Shown here one piece after another: positions 1-55,397 of a stretch of 64,000 nt of DNA. A program made the translations under genes and the position numbers. The DNA comes from Octopus sinensis (taxonomy: Eukaryota), in the NCBI RefSeq assembly GCF_006345805.1, contig NC_043023.1, forward strand, positions 10,602,001 to 10,666,000, written 5' to 3'. The notes under the pieces were generated by a model that saw only the letters and a list, made by a program, of their open reading frames with translations, was not told where the DNA came from and made no database searches. The number at the start of each line of letters is the position of its first letter. Within the stretch, counting starts at the first letter, position 1.

Positions 1-2
1 AC

Positions 3-848
3 AGGCGTGTTCATACAGGAGAAAAGCCATATCACTGTGAAATCTGTGGTAAATCTTTCTCTCGAAACGATAACTTAACCAAGCACAGGCGTGTTCATAC
101 AGGAGAAAAACCATATCACTGTGAAATCTGTGGTAAATCTTTCTCTCGATACAAATGCTTAACCAAGCACAAGCGTGTTCATACAGGAGAAAAACCATAT
201 CACTGTGAAATTTGTGGTAAATCCTTTTCTCAAAACGAAAACTTAACCATACATAGGCATGTTCATACAGGAGAAAAACCATATCACTGTGAAATCTGTG
301 GTAAATCTTTCTCTCAAAACAAAACCTTAACCAAGCACAAGGGTGTTCATACAGGTGAAAAACCATATCACTGTGAAATCTGTGGTAAATCCTTTTCTCA
401 AAACGATAACTTAACCATGCACAAGCGTGTTCATACAGGAGAAAAGCCATATCACTGTGAAATCTGTGGTAAATCTTTCTCTCGAAACGATTGCTTAACC
501 AAGCACAGGCGTGTTCATACAGGAGAAAACCCATATCACTGTGATATCTGTGGTAAATCTTTCTCTCTAAATGATACCTTAACCAAGCACAGGCGTGTTC
601 ATACTGGAGAAAACCCATATCACTGTGATATCTGTGATAAATCCTTCTCTCGAAGTGATAGCTTGACTAAGCACATACGCATCCATACAGGTGAGAAGCC
701 ATACTACTGTGATATCTGTGGTAAATCCTTTTCTCAAAGCGATACCTTAAGTAGGCACAAGATTAGTGTTCATACAGGAGAAATACCATATCATTGTGAT
801 ATCTCTGGTAAATCATTTTCTCAAAATAGTCAGCTGCTTAATCACTGA
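3..848 (+). CDS. C2H2 zinc-finger gene, unit A (5'-partial, begins before the window)
   Basis: Open frame from 3 to TGA 846-848. Nine intact fingers (helices RNDN, RYKC, QNEN, QNKT, QNDN, RNDC, LNDT, RSDS, QSDT) with TGEKP-type linkers, then a broken finger [14 protein letters not shown]. Order matches fingers 15-24 of unit G. Confidence 0.9.
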
Positions 849-4452: not shown

Positions 4453-5018
4453 GGCACAGGAGTGGCTGTATGGTAAGTAGCTTGCTTACAAACCACATGG
4501 TTTCGGGTTCAGTCCCACTGCGTGGCACCTTGGGCAGGTGTCTTCTACTATAGCCTCAGGCCAACAAAAGCCTTGTGAGTGCATTTGGTAGACGGAAACT
4601 AAAAGAAGCCCGTCGAATATATATGTATATATATATATATATACATGTATGTGTGTGTATATGTTTGTCCCCCTAACATTGCTTGACAACCGATGCTGGT
4701 GTGTTTACGTCCCCGTCACTTAGCGGTTCGGCAAAAGGGCCCAATAGAATAAGTACTAGGCTTACAAAGAATAAGTCCCGGGGTCGAGTTGTTCGATTAA
4801 AGGCGGTGCTCCAGCATGGCCGCAGTCAAATGACTGAAACAAGTAAAAGAGTAAACTTAGCGGTTCGGCAAAAGAGACCGATAGAATGAGTACTAGGCTT
4901 ACAAAAGAATAAGTCCCGGGGTCGAGTTGTTCGATTAAAGGCGGTGCTCCAGCATGGCCGCTGTCAAATGACTGAAACAAGTAAAAGAGTAAACTTAGCA
5001 GTTCCGCAAAAGAGACCG
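4453..5018 (+). mobile_element. tRNA-headed SINE (family A) with internal (TA/TG)n and a duplicated 3' tail
   Basis: Head GGCACAGGAGTGGCTGTATGG...GGTTCAGTCCC. The about 138-bp tail module repeats at about 4718, 4856 and (partial) 4994. Family copies recur at 23151, 29120, 30121, 36330 and 61534. Confidence 0.8.
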
Positions 5019-5187
5019 TTTTCTACGCACTTTTTGTAGGTACTACTAGTGAACAGTGGTCCCGGTGCGCTCACACGCACATGGGTCTTTTTAGCAAGCA
5101 CAGCAAACGTTCGCATTTTCTAAAGGTGACATATTACTAATTGGTCATTCATTCGTGGAAGTTGCTTTTGATATAATTGTTTCTTAA

Positions 5188-5400
5188 GGCGGCGAGCTGG
5201 CAGAATCGTTAGCACGCCGGGCGGAATACCTGGCCGTATTTCGTCTGTCTTAACGTTCTGAGTTCAAATTCCGCCGAGGTCGACTTTGCCTTTCATCCTT
5301 GCGGGGTCGATAAATTAAGTACCAGTTGCGTCCTGTGGTCGATCTAATCGACTGCCCCTCTCACCCCAAATTTCTGGCCTTGTGCCTAGAGTAGAAAAGG
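5188..5400 (+). mobile_element. SINE family C (upstream block of unit B)
   Basis: GGCGGCGAGCTGGCAG...GAGTTCAAATTCC...GACTTTGCCTTTCATCC..GGGGTCGATAAATTAAGTACCAG. Paralogous copies at 17395, 38185 and 51776. Confidence 0.75.
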
Positions 5401-5619
5401 ATATAATTGTTACCTCAGTTACCTGCTAGAAGCAAAGTTGTTATTAACAGACTTAATATTGGGGGTGTGGGGGAGATTAGTATCAACCTCTGTTTTCGAT
5501 GGATCTTTATTTTGATTCCGAAGCAATTAAAGGTAAAATTGACATCGGCGGGATTTGAGCTCAGAACGTAAAAAACCACAAGAAATACTGCCTGGCGTAA
5601 ATAGTTGCTGTTAATTTTG

Positions 5620-5836
5620 GTACGACGCTAAGATTTCGTTTCGGTATTTCAAACAAACCATTACATGTTTTATATATTCCCCGTTTACACAATTTTTGTC
5701 ATGGTTCTTTTTAGGGTCAGATATTCTTTGATTTCGTCTAAACTTATCGACTTTTCTCGATGAATTTCTACTTTTGTATCAAAACTGCTGGGGGAAAGAC
5801 TATTCGGAGGATAAGGAGTGATATTAAATGGTGAGT
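5620..5836 (+). promoter_or_regulatory. Putative non-coding exon 1 and splice donor of unit B
   Basis: Consensus donor AAATG|GTGAGT (GT 5831-5832), conserved in D and G. It lies in a relatively CpG-rich non-TE segment. The 5' limit is a guess; no RNA evidence. Confidence 0.5.
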
Positions 5837-6049
5837 AAAGTAATAATTTCATTTTGTTTTTATATTAGACTGATGAAATGAGTTCCAGGCATAAAAAACA
5901 AATAAGTTCTGGGGTCGATCCAGTCTCACTACAGATTCTTCAAGGCGATGCCCCAGCATGATGGCAGTCTAATGACAGAAATAAGTAAAAGATAGTAATA
6001 ATAAGAAGCAGAATTATAATTATATATATATATATACACACACACAGTT

Positions 6050-6805
6050 GCAAAGTGCCCCTCCTCCCCGTCCAAGGACGGTGATGAGTTGTCAAACATT
6101 TAAACCAAACTTTCTCAAGACAACTTGTCCGACCGCTCCATAGGCCTCTCCTTTGAGAAACACTGATTCAACCTAAATTAGGGACACCAGCAAAAGAAGA
6201 AATAAAGATAGACTTTTTTTCTATTCCAAAGAAAAACGATTTTATTCGCAAAAATATGCAACCGAAGAGTTTAAAGTACCAGTAATTATAAGGCTGCTGA
6301 CTGGGAGAACACAAACATGGTTTAAACAGTTCTTTTCATTAAAAAATAATTAAGCATGCCTATATTTCAATAAAACTTTTGGTTTTGTTAAACAAAGTTA
6401 AGGCAAAGAAGAAAAAACTTCTTGAGAAACGAAATAGTCTCTCCTTCCTTCATGCCAAGTTTGAAGAAAATATCTCTTTTGCATCCTACATTTTTGGTCT
6501 CTTAAATATACTGCATTTTGTGGCATTATTTCAAGCCAGCCGGCACAAACTGCATGTGCATTTTTCTTGCGTACGTGTAGTATCGATCACAACAGCTGAT
6601 GTACTTGCGCATATAAATGCACGTTCCCATGGCTTTATCGATCGTATTCTCACCTGGAATCGATTTTTGTAATTTTTTCAAGACTTATACACGTCCTGAT
6701 ACCTTCGGCATCTACATATCGAATTAGGCTGCAATCAGATTGAGGATGCCCGAGATACTAGAGGACACACAGACAGACAGAACAGATTTTATATTATAAA
6801 TATAT
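6050..6805 (-). mobile_element. Putative non-autonomous element with a Helitron-like 5' end (intron 1)
   Basis: Minus strand begins TTTATAATATAAAATCTGTTCTGTCTGTCTGTGTGTC. Hairpin CCGTCC-TT-GGACGG near the other end but no CTAG. Copies at about 17787, 39045 and 52630. Confidence 0.4.
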
Positions 6806-6817
6806 ATACGTATATAC

Positions 6818-6858
<41 letters not shown>

Positions 6859-6866
<8 letters not shown>

Positions 6867-7138
6867 AAAACTACCTTTTATCAATTCAAAATGAACAATT
6901 AAATTACACCATCTAGAAAATTACATATAATAGAAATATTAAAATTAAAATAACCATAAAATATCCATGATTAAGTAAATTGCAAAAAAATAATAAGAAC
7001 ATATATAATGGGTAGAATAACGACACGTCATTGATATTTTATTGTTATTTTAATTTTAATAATTCTATTATATGTAATTTTCTAGATGGTGTAATTTAAT
7101 TGTTCATTTTGAATTGATAAAAGGTGGGTTTTTTCTAA
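6859..7138. mobile_element. AT-rich foldback/MITE-like element flanked by (TA)n
   Basis: About 105-bp arms (6859-6965 and 7033-7138) are near-perfect reverse complements around an about 67-bp spacer. Confidence 0.75.
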
Positions 7139-7354
7139 TTTTTCATATATATATATATATATATTATATTGTGAAATTTGATTTAGTATTTCTAAATTGA
7201 ATTTTTTTCCTTGTGAGTTTGGATTTATATTCCCTCAAATAATTTTTATATGTATGTATATATATATATCATGGTGATCTGTATAAGGGGCATCTATACT
7301 GCTTTGCATAAAAGACACCCATACATGTACCATGTGAGAAGATCTCAACACAGT

Positions 7355-8040
7355 CTCTAAAGTGGTTGGCGTTAAGAAGAGTGTCCAGCTGTAGAAAGCA
7401 ATCTAAATCAAGCAGGAACTGGGGGCAGCACCCCTGTTTGCCAGCACAGGTCAAACCAACCAACCCAGGGAAGCATGGTAAATGGACATTAAATGTAAAA
7501 AGCTGTGCCAAAACTGATCTTGCCACTTAAAATGTACTCAATACACTCTGTGGTATGGTTGGTGTTAGGAAGAGCATCCAGCTGTAAAAGCTGAGCCAAA
7601 ACAGACACACAAGTCTGGGGCAGTCTCCTGACTGACCACCTCCTACCAAACCATCCAACAGATACTGGTATTGAAGGCAGACATTAAATGAAGGGGATCA
7701 GGAAACGAGAATCCTGGCAGTTTGCTGTGTTTGAAAAGACACATCAAGCTAAGTAAAAGCATGGTTGCCCTTGCATACAAGCTTGTCCCTTGCAACCCCC
7801 TCCAGCTGAGCATCCCAAATCCTGCAGGCTCATGGGTGCTGATACCACGTAAAAAGCACCCAGTGGTACTGCGTAATATCACCCAGTACATTGTGTAAAG
7901 GGTTTGTGTTAGAAAGGGCATCCAGCCATAGAAACTATTTTAAGATAGAGATGGGGCCTGATCAGCCCTTCAGCTGGTTAGCTCCTTTCAAATCATCCAA
8001 CCCATGCCAGTGTGTAAAATGGAATTTAAATGATGATGAA
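7355..8040 (+). repeat. Tandem degenerate RTE-type 3' tails
   Basis: Three old copies of GTGGTTGGCGTTA.GAAG.GCATCCAGC...CCAACCCA...GCATGG..AA.GGACATTAAATG, the same terminus as the RTE LINEs in this window. Confidence 0.6.
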
Positions 8041-8077
8041 GTAATAATTTTAAATTTATATATACACCTTATAGTAT

Positions 8078-8345
8078 ACCATTGCCTTTCTGAGCGAACG
8101 ATTTGCCACAGATATCACAGTGATATGGCTTCTCACCTGTATGGACGCGTCTGTGCCTTGACAAGCCTTGATTTCGAGAGAATGATCTACCACAGGTATC
8201 ACAATGATATGGCTTCTCTCCAATATGAATACGTCGGTGAGTGAGTAGGTTAGTTTTCCGAGAGAATAATTTACCACAGGTATCACAATCATATGATGTT
8301 TTGCCCTCTTCATTCTTTACATCATCAGATAAATCAATTATTTTA
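8078..8345 (-). pseudogene. Inverted fragment of a divergent ZNF paralog (leader plus about 2.5 fingers) in predicted intron 1 of unit B
   Basis: Minus strand: [39 protein letters not shown]...[24 protein letters not shown]. It is absent at the equivalent position of units C and D. Confidence 0.9.
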
Positions 8346-8859
8346 GATAGCCTTCTCACTGTATTTGGCTATCTGATGTCATCTACAGTATGGATATAAA
8401 TGACCCTGGATTTATTTGAGGAATTCCTTCATGTCAGTAGAGTTTAAAACATGAGAGAAAGAGAAAGAAAATAGAATTTCCAAGACTAGTATTCACTATG
8501 ATTGTTTCAACCCATCGTGCATCTGTGCCTCGCAGGTGAGATTCTGTACGAACAGTTGTGGGGCATCCTTTGATGCAGACATGTCCCATCAGGTGACTTA
8601 TCAAATGGTTCCTCGTATTTAAATTTCTGTTTTGCTTATTTCGATTAGAATTCATTTTGGTATTTGGGACATGTCAAGCTTCTTTCAGTTTCCATCAACA
8701 TGTCTTTTATTGGCCACTCTGGGACTGAACCCAGGACCATGTGGTTGGGAAGCCAACTTCTTACCACACAACCATCCCTGCACTTCTACAGCCATGTCTA
8801 TATAAAAATGTAGTAAAACTTTCACTGTTTTAATCTCTCTAATTCCTAATTATCTTGTA

Positions 8860-8995
8860 TGTTTTACACTGTTGTTTCTCTTTCGTTTCAGATTATCAGA
8901 TGACATCTGCTTCACAGGATTTTTACATAAGCAACGTCATTAGAATGGAAAGTCTTTTGAAGACTGAGCAAAGATGTTATACAAAACACGTATAA
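8860..8995 (+). other. Putative 3' splice site and 31-codon short ORF (unit B)
   Basis: Polypyrimidine tract CTGTTGTTTCTCTTTCGTTTCAG| (AG 8890-8891) with an upstream CTAAT. ATG 8900 to TAA 8995 encodes MTSASQDFYISNVIRMESLLKTEQRCYTKHV. Confidence 0.55.
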
Positions 8996-9643
8996 CCCTG
9001 TTTCTATGAATATTTACTGAATTACTGCAAAATATATCTTCTGAACTCTGACATATATGTAGCAAAATTTCTCTTCTTTATTGTCTGGAATACACAGAAA
9101 ATTATATTTGCATCTTAATTAATCATTTAGCATTTAAACTAGCACAAATATTCTGACCTTTCACACTCACCCTGCAGTGTCAATTTAAACATAAACAATC
9201 AAATCACTGAAGTCTCAGAGCTATGAGATAATCCATGATTAATTCAAAACAATATGAATAAATAAGCATTACATTTCACAAAGGAATCTCAATGCTAAAC
9301 GGTTAAACTGGCCATATTTTTGTGTGTTTTATATTCATACTAGCCTGATCCCACCCCTCACACCCTGCCTACAAGGTCATTCTAAAAATAAACAATCACA
9401 ACATTGAAATCTGAACATGATAACATAATGAATAATTAATTCAGAAGAATTTCAATAAACATTCTATTTGACAGAGTAATCTGAATGTTAATGAGTTAAA
9501 GCAATTAAGAAGGCAGTTTGCAGCATCTTCAGATATTAACAAAGATCACTTTTGATGGAGATATATCAGTAGAAATATTTGTTCAGAGCAATATACGAGA
9601 AGAAGGAAAACCTTTGTGAACTGTGACAAGAGAAAGGAACATT

Positions 9644-10729
9644 ATGGAAAACGAATTATTTAGGAGTGAAGTTGAATGTAAAAGAGAGTCTGAAGAAATT
9701 GATTTTTCTGATGAGGAAAAGAATGAAAAGGGCAAAACAGCATTTGATTGTCATATCTGTGGCAAGTCGTTCTCTCGGAAAGCTAAGTTAGTCATTCACG
9801 AACGTACTCATACAGGAGAAAAACCATATCACTGTGAAATATGTGACAAATCTTTTTCTGAAAACGATCACGTAACTATGCACAGGCGTGTTCATACAGG
9901 AGAAAAACCATATCACTGTGAAATCTGTGGTAAATCCTTTTCTCAAAACAATCACTTAACTAGGCACAAGAGTTGTGTTCATACAGGAGAAAAACCATAT
10001 CACTGTGAAATCTGTGACAAATCTTTTTCTCAAAACGATCACTTAACCATGCACAAGCGTGCTCATACAGGAGAAAAACCATATCACTGTGAAATCTGTG
10101 GTAAATCTTTCTCTCAAAACGGTACCTTAACCAAGCACAGGCATGTTCATACAGGAGAAAAACCACATCACTGTGAAATCTGTGGTAAATCTTTCTCTCG
10201 AAACAATAACTTAACCAAGCACAGGCATGTTCATACAGGAGAAAAACCACATCACTGTGAAATCTGTGGTAAATCCTTTTCTCGAAACGATCACTTAACC
10301 AAGCACAAGCGTGTTCATACAGGAGAAAAGCCATATCACTGTGAAATCTGTGGTAAATCTTTTTCTCAAAACGATACCTTAACCAAGCACAAGCGTGTTC
10401 ATACAGGAGAAAAGCCATATCACTGTGAAATCTGTGGTAAATCTTTTTCTCAAAACGATCACTTAACCAAGCACAAGCGTGTTCATACAGGAGAAAAGCC
10501 ATATCACTGTGAAATCTGTGGTAAATCTTTTTCTCAAAACGATCACTTAACTATGCACAGGCGTGTTCATACAGGAGAAAAACCATATCACTGTGAAATC
10601 TGTGGTAAATCCTTTTCTAAAAACGATACCTTAACCAAGCACAAGCGTGTTCATACAGGAGAAAAACTATATCATTGTGATACCTCTGGTAAATCATTTT
10701 CTCAAAATAGTCAGCTGCTTAATCACTGA
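9644..10729 (+). CDS. C2H2 zinc-finger protein, unit B (361 aa, 11 intact fingers)
   Basis: First in-frame ATG after TGA 9617-9619. Acidic leader [25 protein letters not shown], 11 fingers, then the broken QNSQLLNH* finger. Confidence 0.9.
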
Positions 10730-11270
<541 letters not shown>

Positions 11271-12301: not shown

Positions 12302-12955
12302 TATATCTCTATTTATAAAACTGAAAAAAAGTTTGTTTGACTCGACCACTTGGATCACTTTCAAGGCCACTACAACCCGTCAGATTAACTCCAAAAATTA
12401 CAGGGACATATAAAATGAAGTGACGATGCCCGTGGGTTACGTTAGAAATCCCTATCTTAAAAGGTGTCGTTGCTAGGACCAAAAACCCACTTTGACAAGT
12501 CTACTCCCATTCTTTTACGTATCTGTCTTTCTCACTCACGCTATTTCCTCCCTTTCCTGTCTAACTCCCCTTCACATACCCTTTATAACTATGTCTGCAC
12601 TCATAGAGAGAATTATCATCGCCACCACCAATACAATCATGAGAACAAATATGAATCAGATATTTATTGTGTTCATTTATATATGTGTGTGTTCGATATA
12701 TAAATATGTATATATAATGTATATATCTGTATTTATGTATATTAAACTTTTTAATACTTTTTGATAGTTATATTTTTAAACAAATTATAAATATAATTTA
12801 ATAATTTTTATTTTAAATTTTAATAGTTTAAATTTTTAAATTTTATATTTTCTATATTTTCTATATTATATTTTTATTTTCATGTTTTTGTTTTGGGTTT
12901 TTCACTGTTTCATTTGCCTATTAGTGGTTTTTTATCTAATTTAATTTATATATAT

Positions 12956-15472
12956 CGTCATCATCATCATCATTTAGCGTCCGTTTTCCATGCTAGCATG
13001 GGTTGGACGGTTTAACTGGGGCCTGTGAAGCCGGAAGGCTTCATCAGGCCCAGTCAGATTTGGCAGTGTTTCTACGGCTGGATGCCCTTCCTGACGCCAA
13101 CCACTCCGTGAGTGTTGTGGGTGCTTTTTACGTGCCACCTGCACAGGTGCCAGACAGAGCTGGCAAACGACCACGAACGGATGGTGCTTTTACGTGCCAC
13201 CGGCACGGGGCCCCGGCGACGCTGGCAACGGACACGAACGGATGGTGCTTTTACGTGCATGGGGTCCAGGCGAAGCTGGCAACGGACACGAACGGATGGT
13301 GCTTTTACGTGCATGGGGTCCAGGCGAAGCTGGCAACGGACACGAGTGGATGGTGCTTTTACGTGCCAACGGCATGGGGGCCAGGTGAGGCTGGCAATGG
13401 ACAAACGATTGGATGGTTCGCTTAACCACAGCTGCAATTTCCACTGATGTTAATTTGGTTTGATTTTGACTGTCCTCACTGGTCTTGCCGGGTCTTCTCA
13501 TCCACAGCATACTTCCATAGGTCTTGGTCTCTAGACATTTCCTTGGTGAGACCTAAAGTTCGAAGGTTGTGCTTCACCACCTCGTCCCAGGTTTTCCTGG
13601 GTCTACCTCTTCCACAGGTTCCCTCAAATGCTAGAGTGTGGCACATTTGCACACAACTATCTTCACCCATACTCGTCACATGCCCATACCAGCGCAGACG
13701 TCTCTCTTGCACACCACAACTGATGCTTCTTAGGTCCAACTTTTCTCTCAAGGTACTTACACTCTGTCGATTATGAACACTGACATTACACATCCATCGG
13801 AGCATACTGGCTTCATTTCTTGCGAGCTTACGCATATCCTCAGCAGTCACAGCCCATGTTTCACTACCATGTAGCATGGCTGTACATACACATACAGTCT
13901 GCCTTTAACTCTGAGCGAGAGGCCTTTTGTCACTAGCAGGGGTAAGAGCTCTCTAAACTTTGCCCAGGCTATTCTTACTCTAGCAGTTACACTTTCAGCA
14001 CACCCACCCCCGCTACTGACTTGGACACTTAGGTAGCGGAAGCTATCAACTACTTCTAGTTTTTCTCCCTGGAACTAGGTAGACGTTGGTCTCTGCACAT
14101 TTTCAGTGTTTATTGCTCCTGAGCATCTGCCACAGACAAAAACTATTTACCTAGTTAGCCTTCCTTTGACATTGCTACACCTCTTATGTGTCCATAGCTT
14201 GCACTTGGTGCACCTTATAGAGTTTCTACCTACACCTTTTTTACAGATCGAGCAGGGCCATCTACCTGAAGGCGTTTGTGACTTGTCTACTTTCCTACTT
14301 ATTAGGACTTTGGTTTTGGCTAGATTGATTCTGAGGCCCTTCGATTCTAGACCTTGCTTCCACACCTGAAACTTCTCCTCCAGTTCTGATAGTGACTCAG
14401 CAATTAGAGCAAGGTCATCAGCATAGAGGAGCTCCCAGGGGTATCCTGTCTTGAATTCCTCCTTTATTGCCTGGAGGACTATGATAAATAGGAGGGGACT
14501 GAGGACTGAACCTTGGTGGACCCCAACCTCTACCCGGAATTCTTCACTGTACTCGTTGCCAACCCTCACCTTACTAGCAGCGTCTCTGTACAGCTCTAAC
14601 TAACCATTCATCTATCCCTACTTTCCTCATTGACCACCAGATAAGGGATCGGGGGACCCTGTCAAAGGCTTTCTCCATGTCAACAAAAGCCAGGTACAGG
14701 GGCTTATCTTTGGCTAGGTATTTCTCCTGCAGCTGTCTTACCAGGAATATAGCATCAGTAGTACTTCTCCCTGGCACAAACCCAAACTGCATCTCATCTA
14801 AGCTAATTCTCTCTCTAATTAGTTGGGCTATAACCCTCTCCGTAACCTTCATTACCTGATCCAGCAGCTTGATACCCCTGTAGTTATTTGTATCTAGGGC
14901 GTCACCTTTACCTTTGTAGTAGTTGACTAGTATGCTGCTACACCAGTCATTGGGTATGACTCCTTCGTGTATCACCTAGTTAACTATACAGGTGAGTAGG
15001 CTATAGCCGACACTACCAGATATTTTGAGCATCTCTGCAGTAATACCTGATGGGCCTGGGGCTTTCTCTGTTTTCATGCTTGTAATTGCCAAAACTACTA
15101 AGGAACTGTCAACTCGGATTGCTGGTCCCTCTGTTGGGTCGACATTCGGCAGACTCTCTTTATCCCATTCATTTTCCTCATTCAGCAATCTTTCATAGTA
15201 GCGTCTCCAAACCTCTCTCTTTGCATCCACATTTAGCGCAAGTGAACCGTCATCCTTGCGAACGCATTTCTCTCCTACCACGTCACGATTCTCTCTCACA
15301 CACTGTCTTGCAACACGAAATACCTCAAGTCTTTCATCCTCCCGGCGCAGGACATTGCCAAATTTTTTCTTATCTGCTTCCCCTCTGGCTAAATACACCT
15401 GCCTCCTAGCTTCCCTTCTGGCAGTCTGATACACTTCCCTGCTACCACCGTTCTTCCAGTCCTTCCAAGCCT
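12956..15472 (-). mobile_element. 5'-truncated, decayed RTE-clade LINE
   Basis: RT motifs in four broken ORFs: NYRGIKLL, QFGFVPGRSTTDAIF, AFVDMEKAFDRVP, GVHQGSVLSPLLF, LLYADDL, FRYL, then RGRPRKTW. The 3' UTR has a 40-60 bp VNTR and a (GAT)n tail. Both ends abut TA repeats. Confidence 0.92.
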
Positions 15473-17608: not shown

Positions 17609-18581
17609 ATATAATTGTTACCTCAGTTACCTGCTAGAAGCAAAGTTGTTATTAATAGACTTAATATTGGGGGTGTGGGGGAGATTAGTATCAACCTCTC
17701 TTTTCGATGGATTTTTATTTTTATTCCGAAGCAATGAAAGGTAAAATTGACAGAATTATAATTATATATATATATATATACACACAGGAGCAAAATGCCC
17801 TCCCTCCCCGTCCAAGGACGGTGATGAGTTGTCAAACATTTAAACCAAATTTTCTCAAGACAACTTGTCCGACCGCTCCATAGGCCTCCCCTTTGAGAAA
17901 CACTGATTTAACCTAAATTAGGGACACCAGCAAAAGAAGAAATAAAGATAGACTTTTTTTCTATTCCAAAGAAAAAACGATTTTATTCGCAAAAATATGC
18001 AACCGAAGAGTTTAAAGTACCAGTAATTATAAGGCTGTTGACTGGGAGAACACAAACATGGTTTAAACAGTTCTTTTCATTAAAAAATAATTAAGCATGC
18101 CTATATTTTAATAAAACTTTTGGTTTTGTTAAACAAAGTTAAGGCAAAGAAAAAAAAACTTCTTCAGAAACCAAATAGTCTCTCCTTCCTTCATGCCAAG
18201 TTTGAAGAAAATATCTCTTTTGCATCTTACATTTTTGGTCTCTTAGATATACTGCATTTTGTGGCATTATTTCAAGCCAGCCGGCACAAACTGCATGTGC
18301 ATTTTTCTTGCGTACGTGTAGTATCGATCACAACAGATGATGTACTTGCGCATATAAATGCACGTTCCCATCGCTTTATCGATCGTATTCTCACCTGGAA
18401 TCGATTTTTGTAATTTTTTCAAGACTTATACACGTCCTGATACCTTCGGCATCTACATATCGAATTAGGCTGCAATCAGATTGAGGATGCCCGAGATCCT
18501 AGAGGACACACAGACAGACAGAACAGATTTTATATTATAAATATATATACGTATATACGTATGTATATATATATATATATA

Positions 18582-18858
18582 TTAGAAAAACTACCTTTTA
18601 TCAATTCAAAATGAACAATTAAATTACACCATCTAGAAAATTACATATAATAGAAATATTAAAATTAAAATAACCATAAAATATCCATGATTAAGTAAAT
18701 TGCAAAAAAATAATAAGAACATATATAATGGGTAGAATAACGACACGTCATTGATATTTTATTGTTATTTTAATTTTAATAATTCTATTATATGTAATTT
18801 TCTAGATGGTGTAATTTAATTGTTCATTTTGAATTGATAAAAGGTGGTTTTTTTCTAA
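18582..18858. mobile_element. Foldback/MITE-like element (unit C copy)
   Basis: Same inverted arms and TA flanks as 6859-7138. Confidence 0.75.
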
Positions 18859-20289
18859 TTTTTCATATATATATATATATATATATTATATTGTGAAATT
18901 TGATTTAGTATTTCTAAATTGAATTTTTTTCCTTGTGAGTTTGGATTTATATTCCCTCAAATAATTTTTATATGTATGTATATATATATATCATGGTGAT
19001 CTGTATAAGGGGCATCTATACTGCTTTGCATAAAAGACACCCATACATGTACCATGTGAGAATATCTCAACACAGTCTCTAAAGTGGTTGGCGTTAAGAA
19101 GAGTGTCCAGCTGTAGAAAGCAATCTAAATCAGGCAGGAACTGGGGGCAGCACCCCTGTTTGCCAGCCCAGGTCAAACCAACCAACCCAGGGAAGCATGG
19201 TAAATGGACATTAAATGTAAAAAGCTGTGCCAAAACTGACCTTGCCTGTGATCTTGCCACTTAAAATGTAGTCAATACACTCTGTAGTATGGTTGGTGTT
19301 AGGAAGAGCATCCAGCTGTAAAAGCTGAGCCAAAACAGACACACAAGTCTGGGGCAGTCTTCTGACTGACCACCTCCTACCAAACCATCCAACAGATACT
19401 GGTATTGAAGGCAGACATTAAATGAAGGGGATCAGGAAACGAGAATCCTGGCAGTTTGCTGTGTTTGAAAAGACACATCAAGCTAAGTAAAAGCATGGTT
19501 GCCCTTGCATACAAGCTTGTCCCTTGCGACCCCCTCCAGCTGAGCATCCCTAATCCTGCAGGCTCATGGGTGCTGATACCACGTAAAAAGCACCCAGTAC
19601 ATTGTGTGAAGGGTTTGTGTTAGAAAGGGCATCCAGCAATAGAAACTATTTTAAGATAGAGATGGGGCCTGATCAGCCCTTCAGCTGGTTAGCTCCTTTC
19701 AAACCATTCAACCCATGCCAGTGTCTAAAATGGAATTTAAATGATGATGAAGTAATAATTTTAAATTTGTATATAGACATTGCAGTATGCCATTTAAAGC
19801 CTGCTCACTGTATTTGGCTATCTGATGTCATCAACAATATGGATTTAAATGACAATGGATTTACTGTAGGAATTCCTTCATGTCCATAGAGTTTAAACAA
19901 TGAAAGGAAAGGAAATAGAATTTACAAGTCTATGATACTCTGTGATCATTGCAACCCATCATGCATCATTGCCTTGCAGGTGTGTCTTGTCAGGTGTGCT
20001 TTGTCAGGTGACTTGTCAAAAGGTACCACATAATTTAATTTCTGTTTTCCGTTTTTGGATTAGAATTCTTTCGGGTAGTTCGAATGTGTCAAGCATTTTT
20101 CAGTTCCCATCTACCACATCCTCTCACAAGGCTTTGTTTGGCCACTCTGGGACTGAACCCAGGACCATGTGGTTGGGAAGCCAACATCTTACCACACAAC
20201 CATCCCTGCACTTCTATAGCCATGTCTATATAAAAATGTAGTAAAACTCTCACTGTTTTAATCTCTCTAATTCCGAATTATCTTGTATG

Positions 20290-20423
20290 TTTTACACTGT
20301 TGTTTCTCTTTCGTTTCAGATTATCAGATGACATCTGCTTCACAAGAGTATTATATAAGCAACGTCATTAGAATGGAAAGTCTTTTGAAGACTGAGCAAA
20401 GATGTTATACAAAACACGTATAA
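20290..20423 (+). other. Putative 3' splice site and 31-codon short ORF (unit C)
   Basis: AG 20318-20319. ATG 20328 to TAA 20423 encodes MTSASQEYYISNVIRMESLLKTEQRCYTKHV. Confidence 0.55.
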
Positions 20424-20910
20424 CCCTGTTTCTATAAATATTTACTGAATTACTGCAAAATATATCTTCTGAACTGACATATGTTATGAAATTTCTCTTC
20501 TTTATTGTCTGGAGTACACAGAAAATTATATTTGTATTTGAATTAATCCTTTAGCATTTGAACTGGCCGTATCAGTCCCAAACGTTCAAGCTATTTTATG
20601 TTAAAACTGCCCACATCTGGCCTCTTATACTCACCTGGCAATGTCATATAAACATAAAGAATAACATCGTTGAAATCTTAAAGCAATAAGATAATGAATG
20701 ATTAATTCAGAAGAATTTGAATAAATAATCATTACATTCGACAGAGTAATCTGCGTGTTAATGAGAAGTAATTAAGAAGGCAGTTTGCAGCATCTTCAGA
20801 TATTAACAAAGATCACTATTGATGGAGATATATCAGTAGAAATATTTGTTCAGAGCAATATACGAGAAGAAGGAAAACCTTTGTGTACTGTGACGAGAGA
20901 AAGGAAAATT

Positions 20911-22788
20911 ATGGAAAATGAATTATATCGGAGTGAAGTTGAATGTAAAAGAGAGTCTGAAGAAATTGATTTTTCTGATGAGGAGAAGAATGAAAAGGGC
21001 AAAACAGCATTTGATTGTGATATCTGTGGCAAGTCGTTCTCTCGGAAAGCTAAGTTAGTCATTCACGAACGTACTCATACAGGAGAAAAACCATATCACT
21101 GTGAAATCTGTGGTAAATCTTTCTCTCGAAACGAAAACTTAACTAGGCACAAGAGTGGTGTTCACACTGGAGAAGCACCATATCACTGTGAAATCTGTGA
21201 CAAATCGTTTTCTCAAAACGAAACCTTAACCAAGCACAGGCGTGTTCATACAGGAGAAAAACCATATAACTGTGAAATCTGTGGTAAATCTTTCTCTCGA
21301 AACGATACCTTAACCAAGCACAAGCGTGTTCATACAGGAGAAAAACTATATCACTGTGATATCTGTGGTAAAATATTATCTCAGAAAGGTAGCTTAGTCA
21401 CTCACCGACGTATTCATACAGGAGAAAGGTCATATCACTGTGATATCTGTGGTAAAATATTATCTCAGAAAGGTAGCTTAGTCACTCACCGACGTATTCA
21501 TACAGGAGAGAAGTCATATCACTGTGACGTTTGTGGTAAATCATTTTTTGATATTCATCATTTAACTACTCACAAACGCATTCATACAGGTGAGAAGCCA
21601 TATCGCTGTGATATCTGTGATATATCATTCTCTCAAAGTTATAACTTAACTAGGCACAAATACATTCATACAGGAGAAAAACCATATCACTGTGATATCT
21701 GTGGTAAATCCTTCTCTGAAATTAGTAAAGTAACTATTCACAAGCGTGTTCATACAGGAGAAAAACCATGTCACTGTGATATCTGTGGTAAATCATTCTT
21801 TGATAATAGTTACTTAACTAGACACATACGTATTCACACTGGTGAAAAGCCATATCAGTGTGATATCTGTGGTAAATCTTTCTCTGAAACTAGTACGTTA
21901 ACAATGCACAAGCGTACTGTTCACACAGGAGAGAAACCATATCACTGTGATATCTGTGGTGTATCATTCTCTCAAAACGATCACTTGACTATTCATAAAT
22001 GCATTCACACAGGAGAGAAACCATATCACTGTGAAGTCTGTGGTAAATCCTTTTCTCGAAACGATCACTTAACCATGCACAGGCGTGTTCATACAGGAGA
22101 AAAACCATATCACTGTGAAATCTGTGACAAATCTTTCTCTCAAAATGATCACTTAACCATGCACAAGCGTGTTCATACAGGAGAAAAACGATATCACTGT
22201 GATATCTGTGGTAAAATATTATCTCAGAAAGGTAGCTTAGTCACTCACCGACGTATTCATACAGGAGAGAAGTCATATCACTGTGATGTTTGTGGTAAAT
22301 CATTTTTTGATATTCATCATTTAACTACTCACAAACGCATTCTTACAGGTGAGAAGCCATATCGCTGTGATATCTGTGATATATCATTCTCTCAAAGGTA
22401 TAACTTAACTAGGCACAAATACATTCATACAGGAGAAAAACCATATCACTGTGATATCTGTGGTAAATCCTTTTCTCTAAACGATCACTTAACCAAGCAC
22501 AAGCGTGATCATACAGGAGAAAAACCATATCACTGTGAAATCTATGGTAAATCTTTTTCTCAAAACGATACCTTAACTATGCACAGGCGTGTTCATACAG
22601 GAGAAAAACCATATCACTGTGAAATCTGTGGTAAGTCTTTCTCTCGAAATGATACCTTAACCAAGCACAAGCATGTTCATACAGGAGAAAAACCATATCA
22701 TTGTGAAATCTGTGGTAAGTCTTTCTCTCGAAACGATACCTTAACCAAGCACAAGCATGTTCATACAGACAGAGAACACATTTCATGA
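20911..22788 (+). CDS. C2H2 zinc-finger protein, unit C (625 aa from ATG, 21 finger repeats)
   Basis: Uninterrupted ORF from [12 protein letters not shown] to HTDREHIS*. Fingers 16 (last His to Leu) and 19 (second Cys to Tyr) are degenerate. The frame is also open 126 nt upstream of the ATG. Confidence 0.93.
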   Translation: MENELYRSEVECKRESEEIDFSDEEKNEKGKTAFDCDICGKSFSRKAKLVIHERTHTGEKPYHCEICGKSFSRNENLTRHKSGVHTGEAPYHCEICDKSFSQNETLTKHRRVHTGEKPYNCEICGKSFSRNDTLTKHKRVHTGEKLYHCDICGKILSQKGSLVTHRRIHTGERSYHCDICGKILSQKGSLVTHRRIHTGEKSYHCDVCGKSFFDIHHLTTHKRIHTGEKPYRCDICDISFSQSYNLTRHKYIHTGEKPYHCDICGKSFSEISKVTIHKRVHTGEKPCHCDICGKSFFDNSYLTRHIRIHTGEKPYQCDICGKSFSETSTLTMHKRTVHTGEKPYHCDICGVSFSQNDHLTIHKCIHTGEKPYHCEVCGKSFSRNDHLTMHRRVHTGEKPYHCEICDKSFSQNDHLTMHKRVHTGEKRYHCDICGKILSQKGSLVTHRRIHTGEKSYHCDVCGKSFFDIHHLTTHKRILTGEKPYRCDICDISFSQRYNLTRHKYIHTGEKPYHCDICGKSFSLNDHLTKHKRDHTGEKPYHCEIYGKSFSQNDTLTMHRRVHTGEKPYHCEICGKSFSRNDTLTKHKHVHTGEKPYHCEICGKSFSRNDTLTKHKHVHTDREHIS

Positions 22789-26335: not shown

Positions 26336-26448
26336 ATGCTTTCATCATGTACGCTTCCCAAGTGGTCACCCATCTAAGTACTTGGTAGGCTCGACATTGC
26401 TTAACTTCGATGATCGCACGAAAACCGGTGCATTCTACTTGATATGGC
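26336..26448 (-). pseudogene. 5S rRNA-derived copy (pseudogene or SINE3-like head)
   Basis: Minus strand GCCATATCAAGTAGAATGCACCGGTTTTCGTGCGATCATCGAAGTTAAGCAATGTCGAGCC..AGTACTTAGATGGGTGACCACTTGGGAA matches the metazoan 5S consensus including Box A and Box C regions. The first about 7 nt do not match. Confidence 0.85.
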
Positions 26449-26452
26449 TTTA

Positions 26453-26851
26453 ATGGCCGTTGCCAGCGCCGCCCCGACTGGCCTCCATGCCGGTGGCACG
26501 TAAGAAGCACCATCCAATCGTGGCCGTTTGCCAGCCTCGCCTGGCACGTAAAAAGCACCATCCGATTGTGGCCGTTGCCAGCCTCGTCTGGCCTCCGTGC
26601 CGGTGGCACATAAAAAGCTCCATCTGATCATGGCCGTTTGCCCGCCTCGTCTGGCACCTGTGCCGGTGGCACGTAAAAGCACCCACTACACTCACAGAGT
26701 GGTTGGCGTTAGAAAGGGCATCCAGCTGTAGAAACACTGTCAGATCAGACTGGAGCCTGGCGCAGCCTTCTGGCTTCACAACCCCAATTGAATCGTCTAA
26801 CCCATGCTAGCATGGAAAACGGACGTTAAACGATGATGATGATGATGATGA
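26453..26851 (+). mobile_element. RTE 3' UTR and tail fragment
   Basis: TGGCCGTT(T)GCCAGCCTCG..TGGCAC VNTR units, then the GAGTGGTTGGCGTTAGAAAGGGCATCCAGC terminus and (GAT)n. Confidence 0.8.
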
Positions 26852-30503: not shown

Positions 30504-30984
30504 TATACACATTGTGTGCTGTTTAAAGCCTGGTCACTGTATTTGGCTATCTGATGTCATCAATAGTAAGGATTTAAATGACACTGGACTTACTTGAGGC
30601 ATTCTTTCATCTCAGTCGAGACAAGAATATGAGAAAAAGAGAAAAGAAATAGAATTTACAAACTACTATTTAGTATGATTGCTTCAACACATCATGCATT
30701 AGTGACTTGTCAAAAGGTACCTCATATTTAAAGTTTCTGTTTTGCTTAATCCAATTAGAATTCATTTTCGTATTTGGTTTATCTCAAGCTTCTTTGAGTT
30801 TCCATCTACCAAATCCTCTCCCAAGGCTTTGATTGGCCACTCTGGGACTGAACCCAGAACCATGTGATAGGGAAACCATCTTCTTACCACACAACCATCC
30901 CTGCACTTCTACAGCCATGTCTATATAAAAATGTAGTAAAACTTTCACTGCTTTAATCTCTCTAATTCCTAATTATCTTGTATG

Positions 30985-31118: not shown

Positions 31119-31766
31119 CCCTGTTTCTATGAATATTTACTGAATTACTGCAAAATATATCTTCTGAACTCTGACATATATGTAGCAAAATTTCTCTTCT
31201 TTATTGTCTGGAATACACAGAAAATTATATTTGCATCTTAATTAATCATTTAGCATTTAAACTAGCACAAATATTCTGACCTCTCACACTCACCTTGCAG
31301 TGTCAGTTTAAACATAAACAATCAAATCACTGAAGTCTCAGAGCTATGAGATAATCCATGATTAATTCAAAACAATATGAATAAATAAGCGTTACATTTC
31401 ACAAAGGAATCTCAATGCTAAACGGTTAATTTGGCCATATTTTTGTGTGTTTTATATTCATACTAGCCAGATCCCACCCCTCACACCCACCCTACAAGGC
31501 CATTCTAAAAATAAACAATCACAACATTGAAATCTGAACATGATAACATAATGAATGATTAATTCAGAAGAATTTCAATAAACATTCTATTTGACAGAGT
31601 AATCTGAATGTTAATGAGTTAAAGCAATTAAGAAGGCAGTTTGCAGCATCTTCAGATATTAACAAAGATCACTTTTGATGGAGATATATCAGTAGAAGTA
31701 TTTGTTCAGATCAATATACAAGAAGAAGGAAAACCTTTGTGTACTGTGACGAGAGAAAGGAAAATT

Positions 31767-32915
31767 ATGGAAAATGAATTACGTAGGAGTGAAGTTGAAT
31801 GTAAAAGAGAGTCTGAAGAACTTGATTTTTCTGATGAGGAAAAGAATGAAAAGAGCAAAACATCATTTGATTGTGATATCTGTGGCAAGTCGTTCTCTTG
31901 GAAAGCTAAGTTAGTCATTCACGAACGTACTCATACAGGAGAGAAGCCATATCACTGTGAAATCTGTGACAAATCGTTTTCTCAAAACAATTCCTTAACC
32001 AAGCACAAGCATGTTCATACAGGAGAAAAACCATATCACTGTGGTATCTGTGGTAAGTCTTTCTCTCAAAGCGAACACTTAACTAGGCACAGGCGTGTTC
32101 ATACAGGAGAAAAACCATATCACTGTGATATCTGTGGTAAGTCTTTCTCTCGAAGCGAAAACTTCACTATGCACAAGAGTTGTGTTCATACAGGAGAGAA
32201 ACCATATCACTGTGAAATCTGTGGTAAATCTTTCTCTCGAAACGAAAGCTTAACTAGGCACAAGAGTTGTGTTCATACAGGAGAGAAACCATATCACTGT
32301 GAAATCTGTGGTGAATCCTTTTCTCAAAACGATCACTTAACCAATCACAAGCGTGTTCATACGGGAGAAAAACCATATCACTGTGAAATCTGTGGTAAAT
32401 CTTTCTCTCGAAACGAAAGCTTAACGAGGCACAAGAGTGGTGTTCACACAGGAGAAGCACCATATCACTGTGAAATCTGTGACAAATCTTTTTCTCAAAA
32501 CGATCACTTCACTATGCACAGGCGTGTTCATACAGGAGAAAAACCATATCACTGTGAAATCTGTGGTAAATCTTTCTCTCGAAACGAAAGCTTAACTAGG
32601 CACAGGCGTGTTCATACAGGAGAAAAACCATATCACTGTGAAATCTGTGGTAAATTTTTCTCTGAAAACGGTACCTTAACCAAGCACAAGCGTGTTCATA
32701 CAGGAGAAGAACCATATCACTGTGAAATCTGTGGTAAATCTTTCTCTCGAAACGATCACTTAACCATGCACAGGCGTGTTCATACAGGAGAAAAACCATA
32801 TCACTGTGAAATCTGTGGTAAATCTTTCTCTCGAAACGATACCTTAACCAAGCACAAGTGTGTTCATACAGGGGAGAAGCCATATTGTGATATCTCTGGT
32901 AAATCATTTTCTTAA
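31767..32915 (+). CDS. C2H2 zinc-finger protein, unit D (382 aa from ATG, 12 intact fingers)
   Basis: MENELRRSEVEC leader, 12 fingers, then [10 protein letters not shown] (CAA to TAA at 32913). Confidence 0.88.
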   Translation: MENELRRSEVECKRESEELDFSDEEKNEKSKTSFDCDICGKSFSWKAKLVIHERTHTGEKPYHCEICDKSFSQNNSLTKHKHVHTGEKPYHCGICGKSFSQSEHLTRHRRVHTGEKPYHCDICGKSFSRSENFTMHKSCVHTGEKPYHCEICGKSFSRNESLTRHKSCVHTGEKPYHCEICGESFSQNDHLTNHKRVHTGEKPYHCEICGKSFSRNESLTRHKSGVHTGEAPYHCEICDKSFSQNDHFTMHRRVHTGEKPYHCEICGKSFSRNESLTRHRRVHTGEKPYHCEICGKFFSENGTLTKHKRVHTGEEPYHCEICGKSFSRNDHLTMHRRVHTGEKPYHCEICGKSFSRNDTLTKHKCVHTGEKPYCDISGKSFS

Positions 32916-33899
<984 letters not shown>

Positions 33900-39835: not shown

Positions 39836-39866
<31 letters not shown>

Positions 39867-41128
39867 TATGAGAAATTAGAAAGTACAACCTTATCAATTC
39901 AAAATGAACAATAAATTACAACATCATAGAAAAATTACGTATAATAAAAATATTAAAATTAAAATAACACATAAAAGATCAATGACGTGTCATTCATTTA
40001 CCAATTATGTAGTTTTTATTATTTTTTTGCAAGTTACTTAATCTTGGATATTTTATGGTTATTTTAATTTAATATTTATATTTTATGTAATTTCGAGATG
40101 GTGTATTTAATTGTCATTTTGAATTGATTTAAAAGGTGGGGGTTTTTTTAATGTATGTATATATATATATATATATGATATATATTTATCCTGGTGATCT
40201 ATGTAAAGGGCATCTATACTGCTCTGCATAGAAAGCTCCCATACAAGGACCATGTGAGAAGATCTCAACACAGTGTCTAAAGTGGTTGGCATTAAGAAGA
40301 GTGTCCAGCTGTAGAAAACAATCTAAATCAGGCAGGAACTGGGGCAGCACCCTGTTTGTAGCACAGGTCAAACCAACCAACCCCAGGGAAGCATCTACAA
40401 CCATAACAAATGCATCTGTGTCTTACCAAGAATTTATAAAAAGCAAAGGAATGCTTCTCAGTAAACAAATCTAGACTTGTTTCTTGTGAATCAGTGGTCA
40501 CGTCTACAAATGAGGTTGTTTGTCCCTGAGTCTTTTCAAAGTGATTCAGAATACAATAGTAATAATAATATTTTGTCTATTCTAAATAATCTTGACATTG
40601 TTTTTGACTTTACATAAAATATTCTTACATTCTACTGTGTTTTATTGTCATTTATTTACAAGTATTATAACATAATAACAACAACAAATCACTGAAGTCT
40701 CAGAGCTATGAGATAATCCATGGTTAATTCAAAACAATATGAATAAATAAGCATTACATTTCACAAAGGAATCTCAATGCTAAACGGTTAAAAACTGGCC
40801 ATATTTTTGTGTGTTTATATTCATACTAGCCAGATCCCACCCCTCACACCCACCTACAAGGTCATTCTAAAACTAAAACAATCACACATTGAAATCTGAA
40901 CATGATAACATAATGAATGATTAATTCAGAAGAATTTCAATAAACATCTATTTGACTGATAATTGAATGATGTTAATGAGTTAAAGCAATTAAGAAGGCA
41001 GTTTGCAGCATCTTCAGATATTAATAAAGAACACTTTTGATGGAGATATATCAGTAGAAATATTTGTTCAGAGCAATATACGAGAAGAAGGAAAACCTTT
41101 GTGTACTGTGACGAGAGAAAGGAAAATT

Positions 41129-41404
41129 ATGGAAAATGAATTACGTAGGAGTGAAGTTGAATGTAAAAGAGAGTCTGAAGAAATTGATTTTTCTGACGAG
41201 GAGAAGAACAGAAAGGGCAAAACATCATTTGATTGTGATATCTGTGACAAGTCGTTCTCTCAGAAAGCTAAGTTAGTCATTCACGAACGTACTCATACAG
41301 GAGAAAAACCATATCACTGTGAAATCTGTGGTAAATCTTTCTCTCGAAACGATCACTTAACTAGGCACAAGCATGTTCATACAGACAGGGAACACATTTC
41401 ATGA
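41129..41404 (+). CDS. Minimal two-finger ZNF ORF, unit E (91 aa)
   Basis: Leader plus first finger (QKAKLVIH) plus last finger ending HTDREHIS*. The flanks carry many 1-bp indels relative to sister units, so function and assembly accuracy are doubtful. Confidence 0.55.
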   Translation: MENELRRSEVECKRESEEIDFSDEEKNRKGKTSFDCDICDKSFSQKAKLVIHERTHTGEKPYHCEICGKSFSRNDHLTRHKHVHTDREHIS

Positions 41405-42057
41405 GGAATAGATTCATTTCCCAAGTTACAGACATTGTTTATGAGTTTTATTTTTCAAGAACAAATCCAAATTTGTGAAAGTTTCTACTACCATTAACAA
41501 GGATCTGTTTGTCTACCAAGAAGTTTATAAAAAGCAAAGGAATGCTTCTCAGAGTACAACAACTTTAGACTTTTTTCTTGCTTGTGAATCAGTGGGTCAC
41601 GTCTCACAAATGATGGTGTCCTGAGTCTTTTCACGAGTGATTCAGAAAACAATTAGAATGATCATATTTTAGTATTCTAAATGATCTTGACATTGTTTTT
41701 GACTTTACATAAATATTCTTTACATTCTACTGTTGTTTTATTGTCATTTATTTACAAGTATTATAAATTTTATTGGTTTAAAACATTTTTGTAGGAATGA
41801 ATTACAATTTATAACATTTCTTCTATTGGAAAATTTATGCTTTGCTTTATGTGTTTTCACTTAGAAGCAATGCCAGTTAAGACACTAACTCATATATCAA
41901 GGCATTATTATGTATCTGACATTATTTTGGCACAAGGCCAAGCAATTTCAGGGGGAAGAGTAAGTTGAATAACCACTGGATCAGCATGATCAGCATGTGT
42001 GCTTTTTACATGAACTAGGACAAATGCTTCTTACAGGGAGTGGAATTACACGATATA

Positions 42058-42442
42058 TCTATATATATAAAGACTGAAGTTGTCTGTGTGTGTGTGTTGT
42101 GGCAGGTTTTGCAGCCTTCAACAAACACTATCTCCTCTGCAGACCCTGCGGTGCAGTTGAACAACTGAGAGGTTTGATTAAAAGAAGGCTTGCTCTTCCG
42201 TACTTAGAAGAAAAAATTAAAAAATCAAATAGGACTAAGTTAACACCAAAATTATTTCCATCAAAAAGGGCTTTTTCTTCTATGAAAATCCCCTATATAT
42301 TATGATTCTTTGACTGCTGTGTTGGCATTTTGTTTGGTGTATTTCAACCAGAAAAATGTTCACTTTCCTAGATAATGCAAAATTTTCAAAACTTCCAATT
42401 CTAAAGGGTCAGAAAAAAACAACACCCGAAGCAATGCCGGTC
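42058..42442 (+). mobile_element. Helitron-like element (unit E copy), 3' end running into (TA)n
   Basis: Paralog of 45057-45437 with shared diagnostic variants. Confidence 0.6.
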
Positions 42443-42444
42443 GT

Positions 42445-42813
42445 CGTATATGTATATATATAATAAATATATATATATATATATACATCAGATATATATA
42501 TATATATAATACATATAATTATATATATATATATTATATAGATATATACATATTTATATATAAACATATTATATATTATATCTTACAATTATATATCTAT
42601 ATACATATAGATATATCTATACATATATAATATACATAAATATACATTATATAATTATACATATATATACATATATATATCTATATAATATATATATAGA
42701 TATATATATATACATTATACATATTTATATTATAAATTATATATATAAAATATACATATATATTTATAGATACATTATACATATCTACATATATAATATA
42801 TACACAATATATT

Positions 42814-42844
<31 letters not shown>

Positions 42845-43443: not shown

Positions 43444-43454
43444 ACCCTGGTTAC

Positions 43455-43750: not shown

Positions 43751-43801
<51 letters not shown>

Positions 43802-44012: not shown

Positions 44013-44013
44013 G

Positions 44014-45056: not shown

Positions 45057-46030
<974 letters not shown>

Positions 46031-46033
46031 GTA

Positions 46034-46870: not shown

Positions 46871-46909
46871 ATATATGTATATATATATATATATATATAT
46901 ACATATATG

Positions 46910-46941
<32 letters not shown>

Positions 46942-54669: not shown

Positions 54670-54788
<119 letters not shown>

Positions 54789-55397
54789 CTTCAGCTGGTT
54801 AGCTCCTTTCAAACCATTCAACCCATGCCAGTGTCTAAAATGGAATTTAAATGATGATGAAGTAATAATTTTAAATTTGTATATAGACATTGCAGTATGC
54901 CATTTAAAGCCTGCTCACTGTATTTGGCTATCTGATGTCATCAACAATATGGATTTAAATGACAATGGATTTACTGTAGGAATTCCTTCATGTCCCTAGA
55001 GTTTAAACAATGAAAGGAAAGGAAATAGAATTTACAAGTCTATGATACTCTGTGATCATTTCAACCCATCATGCATCATTGCCTTGCAGGTGTCTTGTCA
55101 GGTGTGCTTTGTCAGATGACTTGTCGAAAGGTACCACATAATTTAATTTCTGTTTTCCTTTTTTGGATTAGAATTCTTTCGGGTAGTTCGAATGTGTCAA
55201 GCATTTTTCAGTCCCATCATCTACACATCCTCTCACAAGGCTTTGTTTGGCCACTCTGGGACTGAACCCAGGACCATGTGGTTGGAAGCCAACATCTTAC
55301 CACACAACCATCCCTGCACTTCTATAGCCATGTCTATATAAAAATGTAGTAAAACTCTCACTGTTTTAATCTCTCTAATTCCGAATTATCTTGTATG

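Follow-up and report, generated by a model that had tools for sequence, protein, structure and literature searches.

Introduction

The editing-complementary sequences (ECSs) of site-specific ADAR targets, such as the intronic one that serves the GRIA2 Q/R site, are short, locally near-perfect and evolutionarily conserved, and they direct editing to the site. Pseudogene-derived endo-siRNA loci are known from mouse oocytes. Metazoan editing, that of Octopus bimaculoides included, mainly hits double-stranded RNA (dsRNA) that arises from neighbouring inverted copies of young repeats (PMC9989829), and in Drosophila hairpin-RNA (hpRNA) loci are known that arose from inverted gene fragments (PMC10317233). 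At the DNA level, class-2 templated sequence insertions (73–414 bp, median 191) are often transcript-copied patches captured at double-strand breaks; they come with microdeletion and microhomology, and with neither a target-site duplication (TSD) nor poly(A) (PMC5110952).

Here we analyse an antisense piece of a C2H2 zinc-finger (ZNF) gene that lies upstream of another ZNF gene, gene B, within the window, that is, the whole stretch of 64,000 nucleotides under study. An earlier reading, made from the sequence alone, had taken this piece for a candidate built-in dsRNA partner of the B coding exon, with a geometry like that of an ECS. In our analysis the piece is, with a probability of roughly 0.75, a recent and neutral templated insertion of part of a paralog, which was later caught in a second rearrangement.

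Results

The zinc-finger cluster and its antisense fragment

According to the ORF listing, C2H2 ZNF genes form a tandem cluster in the window that repeats every ~11 kb, and every gene lies on the plus strand (Table 1). A six-frame scan of the window recovered 98 fingers, 96 on the plus strand and two on the minus strand, the latter both belonging to the fragment upstream of gene B. This fragment and its truncated copy in unit G, where the trace is that of a linker, are the only antisense ZNF sequence in the window. LINE reverse-transcriptase remnants also occur, and for the transposon reverse-transcriptase remnants the best matches bearing a name come from Octopus vulgaris (87% identity) and O. 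bimaculoides (~70%), which makes it reasonable to assume an octopod source and, with it, the coleoid setting of the earlier reading. When the proteins of B, C and D, and the 96-aa ORF that covers the fragment, were looked up as exact sequences, the protein database returned no record, and no representative of the window's ZNF family was found in the database searched.

Table 1 Features of the window referred to in the text; a slash marks a junction or insertion point.
Feature	Position	Strand	Description	Evidence
Inverted ZNF gene fragment, inserted	8084..8348	-	88 codons: leader (18 protein letters not shown), C2H2 fingers 1 and 2 intact, half of finger 3	blastn, repeat search, translation, empty-site alignment
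Incidental 96-aa ORF over fragment	8069..8359	-	GTG start in flank DNA, stop just beyond fragment	ORF listing
Left flank	7743..8083	+	SINE-like dispersed repeat, A/T-rich end is the insertion point	paralog alignment
Complementary arm	9689..9948	+	leader and fingers 1-3 of gene B coding exon	inverted-repeat search, cofolding
Gene A, tail	1-848	+		
Gene B	9623-10729	+	coding sequence 9644..10729 (MENELF..., 361 aa, ~11 fingers)	ORFs, alignment of paralog 5' regions
Gene C	20785-22788	+		
Gene D	31641-33359	+		
Gene E, short	41003-41404	+		
Remnant F	near 44100	+		
Gene G	55954-58118	+		
Empty insertion site, unit C	19794..19798	.	ccattt/aaagcc	alignment
Empty insertion site, unit D	30522..30527	.	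gctgtttaaagcc	alignment
Empty insertion site, second position in G	54904-54908	.		alignment
Truncated fragment copy in G	54682..54789	-	equivalent to 8084-8191	blastn, alignment
Second, C-like copy of left flank	54790..54908	+	last 115 bp of the flank, then empty site	alignment

Alignment to the empty sites gives the fragment a length of 265 bp and shifts its limits, previously drawn at 8078–8345, to those given in Table 1. The sequence-only reading had described an antisense piece of a divergent paralog, and this is borne out both by the leader and finger ORF on the minus strand and by blastn alignments in reverse orientation. Positions 8088–8347 match the leader and fingers 1–3, on the opposite strand, of G (79.2% identity), C (78.5%), D (78.5%) and B (76.9%, 9689–9948), with E-values from 1e-53 to 1e-59. 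Identity to B, put earlier at ~80% across the first ~150 nt, measures 80.7% there and 77% over the whole length, which is below the value for each of the other three full-length paralogs compared (C, D and G). By blastn, the remaining finger registers are essentially all matched as well, at 72–80%. The frame is open through all 88 codons, as had been claimed, and all eight zinc ligands of fingers 1 and 2 are present.

Elsewhere in the cluster, the reading frames of G and D are each split into two overlapping or adjacent ORFs by a frameshift or stop, while E stops after two fingers and ends in a tail (10 protein letters not shown) identical to that of C; among the members of the cluster, several may represent pseudogenes or chimeras from unequal crossover. 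Past the stop codon of B, finger-homologous DNA runs ~540 bp further (10729–11268), with equivalent stretches after the stops of A, D and G. These stretches are fossil fingers, and the one at 11086 carries a 28-nt exact complement to the fragment. A 100-N assembly gap (44014–44113) adjoins long (TA)/(TATG)-type microsatellite tracts at 42000–48000, and the assembly around it may be locally unreliable. A full-length 5S rRNA match on the minus strand (26338–26455; 60 bits, E = 4e-10), lying within a repeat also present at 12954–13342, probably represents either a SINE derived from 5S or a 5S pseudogene; at the fragment locus, Rfam and ARAGORN gave no hits.

Empty sites and junctions of the insertion

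The two flanks of the fragment are contiguous in paralogous units: by blastn, 8001–8083 corresponds to C 19712–19794 and 8349–8448 to C 19798–19897. The absence of the fragment from C and D, already observed in the earlier reading, takes the form of clean empty sites, and a further empty site lies at a second position in G, all three being paralogous and not orthologous loci. Because of these sites, and because the flanks align base for base, the fragment is an insertion and not ancestral sequence. The opposite account, namely that a minus-strand ZNF gene or inverted unit was ancestral, decayed in place and was deleted from C, D and G, could appeal to the fact that both gene orientations are common in ZNF clusters. 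We nevertheless regard it as extremely improbable, as it would have to accommodate three empty sites that are precise within 3 bp across both right-flank lineages (C/G and D), an abrupt end of ZNF homology on both sides with both flanks colinear with other units, and a CpG content in the fragment that is still exon-like.

An assembly artefact was also considered, and is ruled out by the left junction, which is identical in both B and G.

The insertion point coincides with the A/T-rich end of a repeat that forms the final part of a 3-kb block, 95–99% identical among B, C and G. The B junctions read ccatt/GCCTTTCTGAG … TTTTAGAT/agcc (ccatt/GCC...AGAT/agcc), compared with ccatttaaagcc at the empty site, with a target loss of ~3 bp (taa) and a junction microhomology of at most 4 bp. 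The whole of 8088–8347 is ZNF coding homology, which starts mid-leader and ends mid-finger, with neither end at an exon border. Inspection of the junctions and the insert revealed no TSD, no poly(A), no transposon terminus and no transposon sequence inside. LINE reverse-transcriptase remnants in the window might suggest a LINE-mediated processed retrocopy, or else capture by a transposon, but we hold this to be highly improbable: the supposed retrocopy would be one without poly(A), TSD or an mRNA 3′ end, consisting of the 5′ part of a coding exon, and the supposed capture would have to explain an insert devoid of transposon sequence and a flanking repeat that exists in C without the insert. 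Features that mark class-2 templated insertions were found instead, namely foreign homology with ends off exon and transposable-element borders, empty sites at homologous (here paralogous) loci, and microdeletion and microhomology with neither TSD nor poly(A).

Divergence, donor and age

Compared with B and D, the fragment shows a dS of 0.63–0.78 and a dN/dS of 0.27–0.34, whereas dS among the paralogs in the window is 0.02–0.36. These values indicate that most of the 21–23% divergence arose in a functional donor under purifying selection and not through decay after insertion; the donor would presumably be a distant, functional ZNF paralog outside the window. A search for homologous proteins with the B protein listed, among its matches, only generic vertebrate and insect poly-ZNFs, and the family-specific leader alone found no protein. 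When the 88-aa fragment was run with HMMER against 1.84 billion representatives, long poly-ZNF proteins of at most 55% identity dominated the matches and the donor was not traced. Since the protein searches did not find the donor, we infer both the age of the fragment and the origin of its template in RNA or DNA. The insertion appears to be recent, because B and C are 97–100% identical in most 100-bp windows of the left flank (2 kb) and because the CpG o/e of the fragment (0.76, against 0.28–0.45 in the flanks) is still exon-like.

The truncated copy in G

A truncated copy had been reported in G at 54676–54788, and we recovered it with slightly different limits (Table 1). It closes a segment, G 51605–54789, that is a 96% copy of B 5017–8191 and comprises the upstream block together with the first 108 bp of the fragment. 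G is colinear with C (from 19678) starting at 54788, at 90% identity overall and 99% in the leader and first fingers. At the junction, GATCTACC/TTCAGCTGG, the middle of the fragment is joined to the second copy of the left flank (its last 115 bp) at a TGATC..CC microhomology. The junction and the arrangement of B-like and C-like blocks point to the truncated copy being a by-product of illegitimate, microhomology-mediated recombination between a B-type and a C-type unit, and not an independent event.

Between the G and B copies, 7 of 108 positions differ. Four of these differences are transitions at three CpG sites; one of the seven is a CGA>TGA change, which places a stop in the ZNF frame, and two others are missense. 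The 117 bp of flank adjoining the G copy carry only two differences from B. A pattern of this kind marks decay that is unconstrained and driven by methylation. That the frame is open in B was weighed as a sign of function and rejected, given the stop in the G copy and the expectation that a young copy should still be open.

C, D and G had been put forward as natural controls for an effect of the fragment on B. C and D are indeed empty, but G, in which a B-like upstream block is fused to a C-like unit, is not independent. The proper control is D, rather than C or G, because its site is empty, its right flank matches that of B at 94.8% identity and its exon region is the most B-like.

The upstream region and transcript context of gene B

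When the 5′ regions of B, C, D, E and G are aligned, strong conservation begins ~250 bp upstream of the ATG (9644), and farther upstream no alignment between the B/D/E and C/G lineages can be made across the stretch equivalent to B 9136–9335. A candidate 3′ splice site (TTTGTTCAG/AG, at ~9575) with a branch-like TTGAT motif lies upstream of the B ATG, and the stretch before the ATG is untranslated, since a TGA in B and a 2-bp deletion in G break its frame. This pattern fits a short 5′UTR plus proximal promoter and an upstream non-coding exon equally well. As the sequence conserved among paralogs starts only ~250 bp before the ATG, the transcription start site (TSS) of B may lie downstream of the fragment, and we consider co-transcription of the fragment with the B exon somewhat doubtful. 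The location that the earlier reading gave for the fragment, a predicted intron 1 of B, is putative. The published accounts of cephalopod C2H2 genes examined here report neither exon structure nor editing for these genes.

The same region has a complex history in its own right. Comparison of 8349–9650 with 19798–20917 gives a mosaic, with B/C identity of 55–87% at 8351–8735 and 95–99% at 8736–9035, a pattern that points to repeated gene conversion and recombination. The part of B that is not alignable to C or G (9136–9335) overlaps a ~145-bp tandem duplication of the B/D lineage (9161–9307 and 9358–9500). A sequence on the minus strand at 8700–8800 (…GGTTCAGTCCCAGAGTGGCC…) looks by eye like a tRNA-derived SINE head, and units B, C, D and G all conserve it at this position; ARAGORN calls no tRNA there.

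Predicted pairing with the coding exon of gene B

The inverted arms (8088–8347 and 9689–9948) extend over 260 nt, are 77% complementary and lie 1341 nt apart. Cofolding of the plus-strand fragment with B 9680–9960 in ViennaRNA predicted a duplex of 212 intermolecular pairs, whose longest helix measures 21 bp, and a ddG of −165 kcal/mol, compared with −9 ± 4 for 30 shuffled fragments and −373 kcal/mol for a perfect complement. The long-range duplex is also present in the MFE fold of 8000–10900, where 226 of the 265 fragment bases pair to 9688–10540. The sequence-only reading had stated that a failure to predict any duplex would count against it; in silico, folding of the region does predict one. 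It had also proposed that the fragment could pair with any finger, and this stands in graded form: pairing is strongest with the leader and fingers 1–3 and weaker with the other fingers (72–80% complementarity to the other registers of B in the repeat search). The longest exact complementary runs between the fragment and family members, of 28–29 nt, fall in the linker-coding region.

Since inverted repeat copies close to each other are the main metazoan ADAR substrates (PMC9989829), incidental editing is plausible if both arms share a transcript. The fragment within the B transcript would then fold on the exon, and the leader, fingers 1–3 and the fragment itself would undergo promiscuous, unselected editing. 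Several observations are consistent with such a substrate, including the predicted 260-nt duplex with its 212–226 paired bases and 1341-nt loop, the octopus-like transposon proteins in the window, and the plausible 3′ splice site (TTTGTTCAG/AG with its branch-like motif) before the ATG. Among the 93 adenosines of the exon arm, 69 are paired in the predicted duplex, and 52 of these would recode if edited. However, the onset of conservation so close to the ATG suits a proximal promoter equally well, and 77% identity lies at the low end for inverted-repeat substrates, which makes this alternative an unlikely one.

The same putative intron contains a further potential source of dsRNA, ~1 kb upstream of the ZNF fragment. 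This is a near-perfect MITE-like foldback at 6858–7165, (TA)n-flanked and with arms of ~125 nt, which is also present at C 18560–18891, E 39850–40188 and G 53412–53753. Its RNA MFE is −167 kcal/mol (z = −23), and by this prediction it would be a far better dsRNA former than the ZNF fragment.

The likeness to an ECS did not hold up. A classical ECS is short, conserved and site-specific, and the fragment instead resembles a 77% inverted-repeat pair: a duplex with the exon is predicted in silico, but the pairing is neither conserved nor co-evolving, the fragment being absent from C and D, and truncated and decaying in G. It is accordingly very improbable that the fragment is a selected regulator, whether a built-in ECS or a source of hairpin RNA and siRNA, that diversifies or silences B and, in trans, the rest of the family. 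The predicted duplex with the B exon would serve such a regulator equally well, the 28–29-nt exact runs would give it targets among family members, and the Drosophila hpRNA loci set a precedent for an origin from inverted gene fragments. Against this, the G copy was truncated by rearrangement and carries a stop and CpG decay, and the fragment is very young, with essentially no conservation. The fragment pairs better with the C, D and G leaders (ddG −183 to −185 kcal/mol) than with its own gene (−165 kcal/mol), and therefore shows no sign of tuning to B. Its identity is also far under that of hpRNA arms, which are long and near-perfect, compared with 77% over 260 nt and a longest exact run of 28–29 nt here.

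Discussion

Under our preferred reading of a recent, neutral insertion, the DNA would have broken where the repeat ends in A/T-rich sequence, ~1.55 kb upstream of the B start codon, and been healed by end joining that captured a 265-nt patch. This patch would have been copied from the coding exon (or from the mRNA or cDNA) of a distant functional ZNF paralog outside the window, and inserted backwards. At a later time, the B-type upstream block with the first 108 bp of the fragment would have been joined to a C-type unit via microhomology, giving rise to the truncated G copy. The fragment would have evolved neutrally since its insertion. If the B primary transcript begins upstream, the fragment and the 5′ part of the B coding exon would fold into a long imperfect hairpin, as an incidental and not a selected property.

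The fragment is probably not under constraint, in view of the decay of the G copy, the weaker pairing with B and its standing as the sole antisense ZNF sequence among 98 fingers, although this judgement of neutrality rests on very few substitutions. Two points can be set against a reading as neutral debris. The open frame and the two intact fingers in B are one, though these are to be expected of a young copy; the strong predicted duplex with the B exon is the other, so that the fragment may have an effect on B RNA.

Where ZNF clusters are prone to rearrangement, break repair and unequal recombination are expected to leave scraps of family members behind, and as such the fragment matters little. 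Its value lies in being a tidy, datable templated insertion whose empty sites are kept in neighbouring tandem units, and whose G copy records a second, microhomology-mediated rearrangement. A more far-reaching scenario, which we consider distinctly unlikely, starts from an octopod with very active ADARs, in which a break-repair accident placed an antisense ZNF piece inside the primary transcript of another ZNF. The resulting exon hairpin could cause clustered recoding (hyper-editing) or yield siRNA for B and possibly, through the 28–29-nt linker matches, for other members. The fragment would then be a newborn hpRNA- or ECS-like element caught within ~1–3% divergence of its birth, with D (empty) and G (truncated) as comparisons. 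Were it true that accidental inverted fragments seed exon-recoding hairpins in coleoids, this would be one route to new coding-sequence ADAR substrates.

Among known dsRNA systems, IRAlus, which are Alu-type inverted-repeat pairs that ADAR edits promiscuously, resemble the present pair in consisting of two inverted copies of ~260–300 nt, 1–2 kb apart on one strand and ~75–90% identical, that form a long imperfect duplex (predicted in our case). Unlike in IRAlus, one arm of the fragment duplex is a protein-coding exon, so that editing would recode; in addition, 77% is at the low end of identity and co-transcription is putative. The fragment is like an ECS in being a sequence outside the coding exon that is complementary to the B exon, with membership of the same gene putative, and unlike one in being long, 77% identical, newly inserted, unconserved and without tuning to the gene beside it. 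With hpRNA and endo-siRNA loci, as described in Drosophila (PMC10317233), it shares the make-up of an inverted gene fragment able to pair with its parent family and a de novo origin in a fast-evolving family. The arms of an hpRNA, however, are adjacent and near-identical, whereas those formed by the fragment and B are 77% identical and one of them is the target exon itself.

The remaining comparison is with class-2 templated insertions (Onozawa et al. 2014, reviewed in PMC5110952). The fragment differs from their usual examples in being a germline event of a cephalopod-type genome, fixed or at least present in the assembly, located within the cluster of its own gene family, and in having a donor whose distance is deduced from dS. 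It agrees with them in its size of 265 bp, in content that derives from a transcribed exon elsewhere, in the lack of TSD and poly(A), and in target microdeletion, short microhomology and arbitrary orientation. Taken together, these comparisons depict an ordinary gene-fragment insertion, probably unselected, with a latent potential, as predicted by folding, to form dsRNA.
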